Source of the DNA: Utricularia gibba
Lineage: Eukaryota > Plantae > Magnoliophyta
Assembly (NCBI GenBank): GCA_002189035.1
Contig: NEEC01000014.1
Span: 1,798,001 to 1,862,000 of the forward strand
Length of the DNA stretch: 64,000 nt
Reading direction: 5' to 3'
A program made the position numbers and the translations under genes. Below, in pieces: positions 51,115 through 60,738 of the stretch (the first letter of the stretch is position 1; each line of letters opens with the position of its first letter). A model generated the notes under the pieces. It searched no databases and had not been told where the DNA came from. It saw only the letters and a list, made by a program, of their open reading frames with translations.

Positions 51115-52703
51115 TCAGCTCTGCTGGATACCGCTAGGCCATGACAAGTTCTTCACAGGCTTAAACATATCTTCCAGTTCTGCTAGAGTTTTCTCATCCT
51201 TAGCTCCGCTGGCGAGTTCTGTTGCAGCTTCGACATTCTCATCCACCTAAGGAGAGCAATTCGGATCAGGGTTTGCAGGGTTCAATCTTTGGATAGTGGA
51301 TTCCGTTCAGTAAGGGATTCACGAAAGTTTCTTGACTTGGGGATCAAACAAAGCACAGAAGAATGCAGATGGAGCAGGTGATGAGTCAAAAAGTATGCGA
51401 GAATATATAGAGAAAGTAACCTGTTTCACGGAATTCATTCCAACAAGGACTGTGGAAATATCCGTATTTGACAAACTGTATTGCAGAGCTAGCTTTGATA
51501 TATTCTTTCCTTTTTCTGTACAGTAAGCAGCAGCAGCTCGGCAGACAGTCTGCGAACAAACAATAAAAACCATTGACAACCTCAGAACTCGTGTGGGTAG
51601 ATTATCAGACAGTTGATCTTCAAGAGAAGACCAAGATCAAGAACAAGATAGAGGTTTATTGCATCTGACTACTTCCCATGCTTTTCCCGGATTTTCTTCA
51701 GAAATTGAGCTTAAATACGACACTAGAACTCTCAGGAAATCCACAAAATTTGGTACCCAACAAAGCAAAGATTAGCAAATACTTAGGATATCACCTTGAG
51801 CTCAGGGGGAGCAGGATGCCATTCTGGAGGGCCACCCTCAGTGAGAAGACCCATAGCCAGAGGAGAAGCAGTTATTATACCAACACCTTTGCTCTTTAAG
51901 TAAGGGACTAAATCCATCAAGGAAGAATCGTTGATGCTATAGTGACAATACGAAAGGATCACATCAATGGTTCCAAGCGGCACTCTGTCAATAACATAGG
52001 TGAAAATTTCCAGTGGAAGGCCCGTTATACCAATGAACTTTGCCTTTCCTGCTTCTTTAATTTTGACAATTGCCGGGATCGTCTCTTTCACAATCTGCAA
52101 AACGTAACAAAATCCACATTTTCCATTCGAAAGCAATGAACTTGGAATATTGCTCATACAAAAAAGGACTTAAAAAAAACCTGATCAAGGGACCCAAACT
52201 CTATATCATGACAATGGAGGATATCAACGTAATCAAGCTGCAGCCTTTCCAGACTTTCATCGATGCTCCTCGTCACTCTTTCAGCACTGAAATCGAAACC
52301 CTCTTTGTATCTACCACACTTCGTTGCTACAATGTACTCATTTCTCGGAACTCCCAAGGCCTTCAACCCCTTCCCTAGCATTATCTCAGACAAAGTACCC
52401 CCATAATACCTTCAGAAAGATGCGATCCAAATTACACTAAACCCAGATCACGAACCCAAATCAACTCGAGAGCGAGAACCAGATAAGCAAAAAGGATCAT
52501 TGAGGCAGAATTATTTACGGAGATGTATCAAAGAAGTTGATCCCCTGGCTAAAAGCACGGCCGACGGTAGCGATGGCGTCAGCTTCAGAGATCTCACCGA
52601 AAACATTTCCCAGAGGAGAAGCACCGAAGCCAACGCAACTTACCTTGATGCCCGTGTTGCCCAAATGCCGAAGCTCCAGTGGCTTAACCCCCTGAATCGC
52701 CAT
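51115..52703 (-). CDS. GalDH: L-galactose dehydrogenase (aldo-keto reductase, ascorbate pathway)
   Basis: LELRHLGNTG..VGFGASPLG..GINFFDTSP|YYGGTLSE, LDYVDILHCHDIEFGSLDQ, SASP-type MGLLTEGGPPEWHPA, and C-terminal WPSGIQQS. Confidence 0.95.
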
Positions 52704-53086
52704 TGACAACGATACCAGGAATGCTCTCCAGATAACTCCTCGGAAAGTTATTTGCCATTGAACAAAAAAAAAAAAAAAAACTCAGAAAATCATATTTTCC
52801 TTTATTAAAATAAAAGACATCATTTGATTCGTTAATTGGGCCTTGGCCCATTGGGCCACCTGTCCGGTAGTTTTATTGAGTTTAATTTAATGTAATTATC
52901 CGCCTCGGGTGGTGTGTTTGGCCCGTGGACCGTTGGTAATTGGCGGCAGTTCAGAGTCCAATCACAACACTCTGTTCTCTCCGCTGTCCTTCTCCGAATC
53001 CATTTACAGATACGATTTTGATTGTTTGCCTTGTATAATTGCAATCCGCATTGCTGTACGATCGTCTGCAACTCGGAGAAGAGGAA

Positions 53087-54922
<1,836 letters not shown>

Positions 54923-55165: not shown

Positions 55166-57842
55166 TTAGCTGTTTGGGCTTCTGAGGGGCCTTCTTGGCA
55201 CATTCATGTGGTGGAAATTTGACTCTCTGGTACCATCGTGTCTCCGAAAACCAGTAGCTGTTTTTTGAGGTGGGCGTAGTTCCCAGGTTTTAGATGAGTT
55301 TTCATGGATTGTGTCGAGTTTTTGACCTGGAATCAAGTAAGACGTCATTTTCTTCATTGGTGAAACCAACCTGCAAATGTGTAGGCGAAAGATTAGAATG
55401 ATCACAGCCTATTCAGATATTCTTTACTAATTCATAAAAGCGCTTGGCGAACCTTTGAATCCTTGTGGAACCTTTTTCAAGAGGTGGCGTAGTTGCTTTC
55501 TTGAACGTGTCTAGCCTTTGCATTGCATTATTTCCTTGAGAAGTCGTAGGTTTTGAGGCCGGGTGTTTGCTTGCCTCTGTCTTTTTTAGCTCTTTCTGCA
55601 CAACAATCACCACCTTTCTTACCTGCGTCTTTTCAACACTTCGGAATCAAAGACAGCCACGTACCTGAACTTCATTCTGTTTCATAACAGGCTTCACGGC
55701 TAATGTGCTCAAGTTCACAGCACATGCCTTTGCAGTATCAATGCAGTTAACTTTCTTCTCTGCGTTGGCTTCCCTGAGAACGCTTCTCTCCTGAAAATGT
55801 AAAAGAAGATATCATATATTGTTTCTTCGTGATTCAGAATTTATCCATGTGTACTTACATCTGTTCTCAGCCTGAAAGGCTTTGGGTTTGTGGTGTTCTT
55901 TCTTTTTAACTTGACTTCCTCCACCACCTGTTCATGAAAGAGCGAGGATTTTGAACACTTGACATTCGAACACCCCAATTCAGAGTCATTTCTAGATCCA
56001 TAATAACAAATACATACCTTTTGGACGTTATCACTCTTGTGAAGAATGCCTAAAATTTTTCTCTTAGTTTGATCCAAGTCCGTACCCGCACATCTGCAGC
56101 AGGTACAGTTCTGGTCAGTCCCAAATTCGTGTGAACACGGTAATAGAAGAAATAAAAGAGGGCATTCGTGCTCTAACCTATTAAGCTCAGAAGCACTAGC
56201 ATTCTCTTTGTCATCATCATTGACATTTTCAGTGGCAGTACTTGGATCATCATTATAGGAGTTCTTCCCTTGCTCTAACCTATTAAGCTCAGAAGCACTA
56301 CCATTCTCTTTGTCATCATCATTGGCATTTTTCGTGGCAGTACTTGGATCACCATTATAGGAGTTCTTCCCTTCTGAAGTATCTTCCACTCCACCATTTT
56401 CTCTCTCAAAGACATTTTTCTCATCTCTCTGCATGTCCTGTGGTAAGGACAGTTCTGAACTCCCTGCCGAAGATTGCACGTTGGAGTGTTCACAAGTGTG
56501 TTCTTGTAGCCCCTGATCCACGCATTGATCCAAAGGCCGTGAAACATCTTTTTTCTTCAAGCTGCTGGCATCATTTGCCACAAGGCTTATTGGTAATTTG
56601 GCTGCATCTTTTTTCGCTTTCCTAATTTTAGCTAGCCGTTGTTCCTGCTTCAGCTTCCCCTTCGTCTTTGAATTGCTCAACCTCCTTGATCTTGATGAAG
56701 AATCCTTACTCACATCCTTGCATGACTTGGTAGAGATCTCCATCTTTTTCATTGTTTCTAACAAATTGGGTACTGGACTCTTCAGTTTACAAGACATCTT
56801 CACTTCTTCTTCTTTCTTTTGAGTCTTAGGAAACAGAGCCTTCGCCACAATTCCACTTTCCGGAACATGAACACTACGAGGTTTATGATTCTGAACACTT
56901 CTGAAAGAAGCTTGTTGCGCGCAGTTTTTATTTCTTGGAGTAGATAGATACTTCGCAGCAACCACTCTACACTTGTTTACAGGTGTAGACTTCGGATTCA
57001 CCTCCTTTTTCTGTTCTTCCGATCTCTTCATCGGAATCGTCGTCAAGCTCAGAGATTTTGGCTTGGACGGTTTTGGAGGAGCAGAAAGAGGACATTTTAG
57101 AGGTGTCCTGAAGAAAAAAGCAGAGTTACAATTTTTCAAGATCGAACTATTCCAGCTTAACAAGGAAGAATTACACACCTAGAAGTCTTTCTTTCAAGTG
57201 CTTTTCGAAGCTTCATATAGGGACTTCTAGCAGCTGTGACCTGTAAGAAGAAATTCAGTACCAAAACCAAAAAAAGGAATCATTCTTCAGCTGAAACATG
57301 GAGAAAATTTTGAGGATAACCCTGAGTACGAATCTCTTGTAAATTTCTTCAGAATCCATTTCTTCCTCATGCTTTTGGTCACATCCTGAAACATAGCAGC
57401 AGTATACAAGTACCGTAAGCATATATAAGCTCTTCCAAAATCTTATTGATAGAAAATGAACTAATAAGACATCCAGCGATTCAAAGAGATCAGAAAAACC
57501 CGATTGGGCAAGACAACCGAGATCCCTCCAATTCACAACAGAACCAAAAAAAAAAAAAATGCAACATATCTACAACCCAGCGCAAGGAGAATATCACTTT
57601 TACACCGTCGAATATTACACAAGAAGAGTTTAGCAATAAGACTAACCGACACGAAAGCAAAACCAGTAGCGGTCATCAGGCCGGTAACGCTCAAGCGAAG
57701 TGAAATCAACAAACTTAGGAGCCTCGATTTCCTCATAAATTTCGGCATCTCTATCGTTGGAAAAAATAATCGGATCTCGATTTTCAGGAGGCGGAGAAGC
57801 ACCAGACGACAATCTGATCGAGTTTTCAGCAAACGCCTCCAT
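55166..57842 (-). CDS. TPX2-like microtubule-associated protein
   Basis: EIEAPKFVDF and DDRYWFCFRVG|CDQKHEEE N-terminal motifs, basic low-complexity middle, TNPKPFRLRTD|ER TPX2-type motif, and C-terminal ESNFHHMNVP. Confidence 0.8.
56169..56372. repeat. Two-copy 102-nt tandem duplication with 5 mismatches inside the TPX2-like gene
   Basis: Copies are 56169-56270 and 56271-56372; protein repeat GKNSYN(G/D)DPSTAT(K/E)N(A/V)NDDDKEN(G/A)SASELNRLE. Confidence 0.97.
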
Positions 57843-57923: not shown

Positions 57924-57934
57924 TAGCCGTTGGA
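57924..57934 (-). promoter_or_regulatory. MSA (mitosis-specific activator, MYB3R site) element TCCAACGGCTA
   Basis: Exact match to YCYAACGGYYA, about 80 bp upstream of the TPX2-like ATG. A site II cluster follows at about 58030-58080. Confidence 0.65.
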
Positions 57935-58250
57935 GGCCGAGCTACGTAGATGGCCTCTAGTAATTAGAATCCCACCATAGGGGTAATTTCGTATTTCATC
58001 CAAATCCTAACGTTATGCAGCTCCGAAATGGGCTGTTATCAACTGGGCCTTATCAACAAGACTGGCCCATCTCCTACGGGCATTTGCAGTCTGATCCGAT
58101 GACTCCCACTTTAATATGATTTTAAATTCTACATCTTACACAATCCATAGAAAAGACACGATCAAAACTGTTGTCCAAATTAGAATGGAGCAAAATCCGA
58201 TCGAAAAGCCCTGCAATGAAGCAGAGGAGAAGCATCGAGATGGTTTCTTA

Positions 58251-60738
<2,488 letters not shown>

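Follow-up and report, generated by a model that had tools for sequence, protein, structure and literature searches.

The locus considered here, on the minus strand of a 64-kb stretch of Utricularia gibba DNA (64,000 nt, hereafter the window), carries two adjacent copies of a short module at the end of a long exon, and each copy includes both a KEN tripeptide and a 5' splice site. The question that it raises is what such a duplication does to the gene product: which of the two identical donors is used, whether the choice between them would adjust the number of KEN motifs in the protein, and whether the event is exceptional within its gene family. A sequence-only reading had proposed that the gene is TPX2-like and that the duplication created a splice-tunable degron switch. 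The best explanation overall, to which we assign a probability of about 0.6, is that of a lineage-specific 102-bp duplication spanning an exon-intron boundary in a conserved and unstudied eudicot gene, one of many amplifications of the KEN module in this family.

The coordinates of the relevant features are collected in Table 1. The coding sequence is divided in nine exons (57842-57647, 57385-57321, 57240-57179, 57107-56178, 56093-56018, 55927-55859, 55790-55665, 55595-55453 and 55370-55166), with the ATG at 57842 and the stop at 55166. The exons add up to 1872 nt with the downstream donor of exon 4 and to 1770 nt with the upstream one; both sums are multiples of three and give proteins of 623 codons plus the stop and of 589, respectively.

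Table 1. Features of the gene and of its duplicated exon-intron boundary, in positions of the window (a slash marks the exon-intron border)
Feature	Position	Strand	Basis or remark
Coding span, AT4G17000-like gene, 9 exons	55166..57842	-	tblastn by exon, orthologues P0009 and P0016 as queries; splice-site reading
Exon 4, long disordered exon	56178..57107	-	Collinear with orthologue residues 110-455; end at 56280 under the upstream donor
Intron 4 (84 nt, phase 2)	56094..56177	-	CTGAC branch-like site 56118-56114; acceptor AG 56095-56094
Exon 5 (CAGTDLDQTKRKILGILHKSDNVQK)	56018..56093	-	Orthologue alignment; exon-by-exon tblastn
Repeat copy A (upstream)	56271..56372	-	GKNSYNGDPSTATKNANDDDKENGSASELNRLE; both repeat searches and copy comparison
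Repeat copy B (downstream)	56169..56270	-	GKNSYNDDPSTATENVNDDDKENASASELNR plus the initial 9-10 nt of intron 4
KEN codons, copy A	56303..56311	-	Sequence reading; ORF translation
KEN codons, copy B	56201..56209	-	KENA fits the family consensus
Upstream donor GT	56278..56279	-	AATAG/GTTAGAGCA; purine-rich, exon-like sequence on its 3' side, T fraction 0.22
Downstream donor GT	56176..56177	-	AATAG/GTTAGAGCA; U-rich tract on its 3' side, T fraction 0.38; orthologous donor position
MSA (mitosis-specific activator) element TCCAACGGCTA	57924..57934	-	82 nt upstream of the ATG

The duplicated unit of 102 nt is present twice, head-to-tail on the minus strand (56372-56271 and 56270-56169), and straddles the exon 4/intron 4 boundary. 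Tandem Repeats Finder reported the interval 56169-56373 with a period of 102, 2.0 copies, 95% matches, 0% indels and a score of 375, and a second repeat search identified the same two copies (56169-56270 and 56271-56372), which confirms the in-frame, 95% identical duplication described by the sequence-only reading; the positions that it gave for both KEN motifs, both donors, the acceptor at 56094 and the alternative introns of 186 and 84 nt also proved correct when the sequence was read again. Each unit is formed by approximately 92 nt of exon and 9-10 nt of intron start, therefore the exon-intron boundary itself was duplicated. The copies differ by five substitutions (56352, 56333, 56332, 56325 and 56301, minus strand) and by no indels, so that the duplication is genuine and already of some age. 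Four of the substitutions are non-synonymous and one is synonymous, and all of them leave untouched the NDDDKEN codons and the region from -22 to +9 around either donor. This 4:1 proportion would be as expected without constraint, i.e. under relaxed or neutral evolution, although five changes have little power; with the same little power, the frame of copy B is still open and its DDDKEN intact.

Scans of a metagenome collection with two exact contiguous patterns, one from exon 5 and the other from the end of exon 4, gave 0 matches, and this lack of an independent sequence of the locus is the circumstance in which a truly single-copy genome, duplicated only in the assembly, could be considered. 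Nevertheless, stutter or collapse errors yield identical copies or indels, whereas the two copies differ by five substitutions without indels and are joined exactly head-to-tail and in frame; in addition, comparable natural duplications are known in relatives. An assembly artefact is, in consequence, highly improbable.

The 84-nt intron 4 is in frame and has no stop codon, and the reading frame is open throughout. In an alignment with 10 Lamiales orthologues the 84 nt that follow the downstream donor correspond to a gap, and the flanking residues, …DDKENxxxSxxNR on one side and …RKI(F/L)G… on the other, align with those of the orthologues. In Erythranthe guttata, Phtheirospermum japonicum and Sesamum indicum a single intron of ~80-110 nt interrupts the corresponding arginine codon, with no change of phase; their donors are AG/GTTGAG, AG/GTTTGA and AG/GTTAAG, respectively, and a GTT donor is found in all four species. 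The gene structure that had been claimed for this boundary is thus supported by an intron at the matching codon and phase in three Lamiales orthologues. Given this coincidence and the orthologue alignment, the downstream donor is the one in the ancestral position.

The window gene can be identified as a syntenic orthologue in the AT4G17000-like eudicot family, because its alignment with the other members is collinear over the full length, it shares a tail-to-tail neighbour, and the position and phase of the intron are shared together with AG/GTT donors. The conserved blocks EAPKFVDF, GCDQKHEEEMD, KCPLSAPPK, AAKYLTTPRNK, DDKEN, NPKPFRLRTDERG and IPGQKLDVIHE are all present, and the neighbour, an abhydrolase/proline iminopeptidase gene located tail-to-tail downstream, accompanies the gene in the window and in the Erythranthe, Phtheirospermum and Sesamum loci (L001, L002 and L003). 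The window protein is highly diverged: its identity to the best matches of a word search is 31-47%, and reaches at most 66% locally on short conserved exons. Word and exon-level searches found no relative closer than the core Lamiales.

From an all-against-all search of representatives (E ≤ 1e-3), the family comprises at least 356 clusters at 50% identity, and the best 150 of these 356 are all clear family members. Nearly all members are annotated as "uncharacterized" or bear misnomers such as "neurofilament heavy protein". The latter is the case of the Arabidopsis member, NP_001329352.1 (P0247, 661 aa, on a contig as long as chromosome 4, 18,585,056 bp), which has in common with the window protein the full-length collinearity, the conserved blocks and the order DKEN-then-intron, to which the shared neighbour gene is added in Lamiales. 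The locus number AT4G17000 comes solely from the label "like AT4G17000" that one annotator gave to a Hibiscus orthologue (P0132). The literature search on AT4G17000 returned a main-text mention in one unrelated paper only, and nothing on the family. The Arabidopsis member is also carried by transcript-like contigs of 2-5 kb, among them L004, in which the coding sequence runs without introns.

The label "TPX2-like" did not hold. Pfam reported no family for the window exons, and more than 25 full-length orthologues gave no match even at E ≤ 10, including TPX2 (PF06886) and TPX2_importin (PF12214); likewise, a PDB search with a profile of 25 orthologues retrieved no chain at E ≤ 10, hence no solved TPX2 chain. 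The ESM Atlas returned plant clusters of "hypothetical protein" and a lead of 0.89, below the reliability line of the tool, to a cluster with 60% PF12214 members. What the family shares with the plant TPX2/TPXL proteins is limited to this language-model lead and to short motifs: an N-terminal stretch (EAPKFVDF...RYWF) that we take to resemble the bipartite Aurora-binding motif of TPX2, and one KPFRLRTDERG motif that presumably resembles a TPX2-type repeat. To our knowledge, AT4G17000 is absent from the named Arabidopsis TPXL1-8 genes. Animal TPX2 is a substrate of APC/C-Cdh1 (PMC2635356), and this argument is not transferable to the plant family without homology.

The KEN motif, in turn, turned out to be deeply conserved. 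The pattern [DEGN]KEN occurs in 174 of the 179 full-length members, with D-D before it in most of them and D-D-K-E-N-A as the usual form, and a KEN is also found in nearly all of the further, more distant representatives. Around the last KEN, positions -1 and -2 are most often occupied by D (106/178 and 121/178, respectively), and the KEN lies upstream of the KPFxLxT motif at a median distance of 68 residues. DDKEN, placed ~10 codons before intron 4, is the most conserved short motif of the family, and CDK-type S/T-P-x-K sites are found within the conserved blocks. The AlphaFold model of the orthologue P0009 informs on the orthologue and not on the window protein itself; in it, 591 of 714 residues have a pLDDT <50, the KEN flanks included; residues 240-446 and 448-504 are in this class and show no secondary structure, and only weak helices are predicted at the N-terminus.

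An MSA element in the promoter had also been pointed out as perfect. The consensus YCYAACGGYYA has a single full match in the 64-kb window, where 0.22 are expected, and both its core CAACGGCTA and an ACGTAG block further upstream show no variation among the promoters of Erythranthe, Phtheirospermum and Sesamum, so this claim stands. With these features the family looks like one of G2/M-expressed, largely disordered proteins. Against a degron role, bare KEN tripeptides occur in ~8% of proteins (PMC4716142). KEN-box degrons of APC/C-Cdh1 substrates have been described (Pfleger & Kirschner 2000; Stewart & Fang 2005; as compiled in Table 1 of PMC2635356), and the family resembles them in the D-preceded K-E-N, the disordered region and the G2/M-type promoter element; proteins of this class often carry more than one degron. 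The difference is that the degron of the plant family is a candidate predicted from sequence, and that homology to TPX2, one of the animal substrates, is not demonstrable. We infer with moderate confidence that the family KEN acts as an APC/C degron of the CCS52/Cdh1 type. Since the KEN is near-invariant and lies in predicted disorder, the promoter MSA element is conserved and CDK-type sites are present, it is reasonable to view the product as a G2/M-expressed protein with such a degron, an assignment that we hold at even odds. The family would be a reasonable candidate for a substrate or a regulator of the APC/C.

KEN modules upstream of the KPF motif vary in number between members. Among the 179 full-length proteins, 5 have none, 76 have one, 79 have two, 11 have three, 4 have four, 2 have five, and one member each has six and seven; the Arabidopsis protein has four KENs, and Lamiales have mostly one. 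Recent tandem repeats of the KEN module, with units of 10-82 aa, are visible at the protein level in many genera, for instance Bidens, Smallanthus, Deinandra, Drosera, Reevesia (P0122) and Humulus (P0224). A separate tandem duplication of the module, with a unit of 96 nt (2.1 copies, 94% matches), is present in Phtheirospermum; it ends 3 nt before the end of the exon and thus excludes the donor. Because the unit lengths differ, many genera are involved and the duplication of Phtheirospermum is independent, the event in the window is best read as a further, independent amplification of a KEN module that is labile in this family. The only thing that sets it apart is its extension by 9-10 nt into the intron, through which the donor was duplicated as well; among the family members seen, only this KEN duplication included the donor.

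The lineage-specific duplication that we favour would have proceeded as follows. A tandem duplication over the exon 4/intron 4 boundary copied the KEN module and the initial 9-10 bases of the intron, which would leave two weak donors of identical sequence at a distance of 102 nt, either of which would lead to an intact protein in frame. Given that both splicing outcomes are intact and in frame, the duplication was probably tolerated rather than selected. Tandem repeats that span an exon-intron boundary are a known kind of event, of which this is a new example, small and probably neutral.

A close known counterpart is the minisatellite at the exon 7/intron 7 boundary of human F7 (Borensztajn et al. 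2006, PMC1557585). In both cases the repeat unit holds the end of an exon and its 5' splice site, and consecutive identical donors precede one acceptor. In F7, units of 37 bp are repeated into the intron, only the upstream-most of the identical donors is used, and the remaining copies are silent (PMC1557585); in the window there are two in-frame units of 102 nt with a conserved protein motif, and in plants the recognition of introns depends on U-richness.

Splicing from either donor of the window gene to the acceptor at 56094 would keep the frame, with an intron of 186 nt from the upstream donor or of 84 nt from the downstream one, both multiples of three. The donors are weak (GUUAGA) and identical from -22 to +9, so their local strength is equal, and what distinguishes them is the sequence that follows. 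In the 50 nt after the downstream donor the T fraction is 0.38, and after the upstream donor it is 0.22; the introns of the gene are in the range of 0.32-0.45 and the exon is at 0.22. The 102 nt that follow the upstream donor are exon-like and purine-rich, and include a GGGAAGAAC stretch. In Arabidopsis, a U-rich sequence just 3' of the 5' splice site recruits U1 via RBP45d and promotes the use of the site (PMC9813592). This sequence context, in which the U-rich tract is confined to the 3' side of the downstream donor, argues mildly for a protein that has two KENs constitutively, and we consider that the chances are about equal for and against a predominant use of the downstream, intron-proximal donor.

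Exclusive use of the upstream donor would turn copy B, with its KEN and its donor, into a silent intronic pseudo-copy, and the protein would have one KEN as in other Lamiales. The 5'-to-3' choice of the first of several identical donors in the boundary-spanning VNTR of F7 (PMC1557585) agrees with this possibility, and an intron of 186 nt has an ordinary length for a plant. It is made unlikely by the exon-like, purine-rich character of the 102 nt that the longer intron would have to include, and by the dependence of plant 5' splice-site choice on nearby U- or AU-rich intron sequence (PMC9813592); the open frame and intact DDDKEN of copy B point in the same direction, with the little power of five changes. 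An appreciable use of both donors is equally doubtful. A query of 200 aa over the repeat found no transcript-derived fragment from the same species, and isoform pairs of relatives (Tarenaya, Acacia and Quillaja) presented no difference at the donor of the KEN exon.

A regulated use of both donors is what a splice-tunable degron switch would demand, with one-KEN and two-KEN isoforms (±34 aa) that differ in their APC/C-dependent turnover. Competition between the donors is possible, since they are identical and weak, both preserve the frame, the KEN is strongly conserved, and its varying number among family members points to an evolvable degron dosage. Against these considerations, the searches for transcript fragments and exon patterns of the locus returned nothing, the isoform pairs of relatives are the same at this junction, the known precedents consist in the exclusive use of one identical donor (PMC1557585), the copies diverge as expected without constraint, and in other species two to seven KENs have arisen with no splicing device involved. 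Two KENs require no splicing trick, because Phtheirospermum duplicated the same module without the donor. The proposed novelty of such a tuning of turnover loses weight: about half of the family already encodes at least two KEN modules directly, through repeated independent duplications. A switch at this locus is therefore very unlikely, and the wider proposal, in which the number of KEN modules would be an evolvable "degron dosage" in a eudicot-wide mitotic family and the choice of donor would set the APC/C-dependent lifetime here, is just as improbable.

With the duplication taken as one of many KEN-module amplifications, the more useful outcome is the description of an unstudied, conserved and probably mitotic family, in which an MSA element, CDK-type S/T-P sites, a near-invariant DDKEN and a recurrent amplification of the KEN module come together. 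The duplication itself would provide a clean natural test of how plants choose between identical 5' splice sites, one in an exon-like context and the other in a U-rich one.

The KEN module has also been duplicated elsewhere in the Lamiales: the orthologue of Phtheirospermum japonicum (locus L002) carries its own tandem repeat of this segment (2.1 copies, 94% matches), which is an independent event. This duplication stops 3 nt short of the exon end, so the KEN motif was doubled and the donor remained single. In the Arabidopsis thaliana member (P0247, NP_001329352.1, 661 aa, annotated as "neurofilament heavy protein") there are four KEN motifs; this member is found on transcript-like contigs of 2-5 kb (L004 among them), in 50 blocks of the sequence collection, and a single paper, on an unrelated subject, has the locus number AT4G17000 in its main text.

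Four of the eight donors of the KEN gene start with GTT (U at +3), and the intron 4 donors of the Erythranthe, Phtheirospermum and Sesamum orthologues do likewise. Given that introns 4 and 5 are both multiples of three without in-frame stops, an open ORF spans 57178 to 55841 unbroken, and retention of one or the other would merely add 28 or 30 residues, respectively. Unlike intron 4 of the window, that of Erythranthe contains stops.

The upstream flanking gene ends just ~400 nt before the ATG of the KEN gene, which leaves a very short promoter. Four Lamiales species share the block CCACGTAG..(8-9 nt)..CAACGGCTA, in which an ACGT-core element lies immediately upstream of the MSA core, and the block AAGTTTAAA, located downstream, is present in the three relatives. 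On the basis of nothing more than their translated ORFs, the two neighbours that flank the KEN gene and the hydrolase gene resemble an LL-diaminopimelate aminotransferase-type enzyme and an aldo/keto reductase. The tail-to-tail pair formed by the hydrolase gene and the KEN gene is kept in three Lamiales, and this pairing is probably the reason why the Hibiscus orthologues P0135 and P0154 carry the wrong name "Proline iminopeptidase isoform 1".

Coordinates of the features in and around the KEN gene (window positions unless a locus is named)
Feature	Position	Strand	Remarks
Flanking genes	58248-60378; 51783-52709	both -	ORF translations alone
Promoter block	57924-57960; L001:2790-2835 (locus of a relative)	- (window)	conserved
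GTT donors	57645-57646; 57319-57320; 56176-56177; 55451-55452	-	
Intron 4	56177-56094	-	84 nt
Intron 5	56017-55928	-	90 nt
Alpha/beta-hydrolase gene	53039-54922	+	proline iminopeptidase-like
Phtheirospermum duplication	L002:3047-3247		96 nt, tandem
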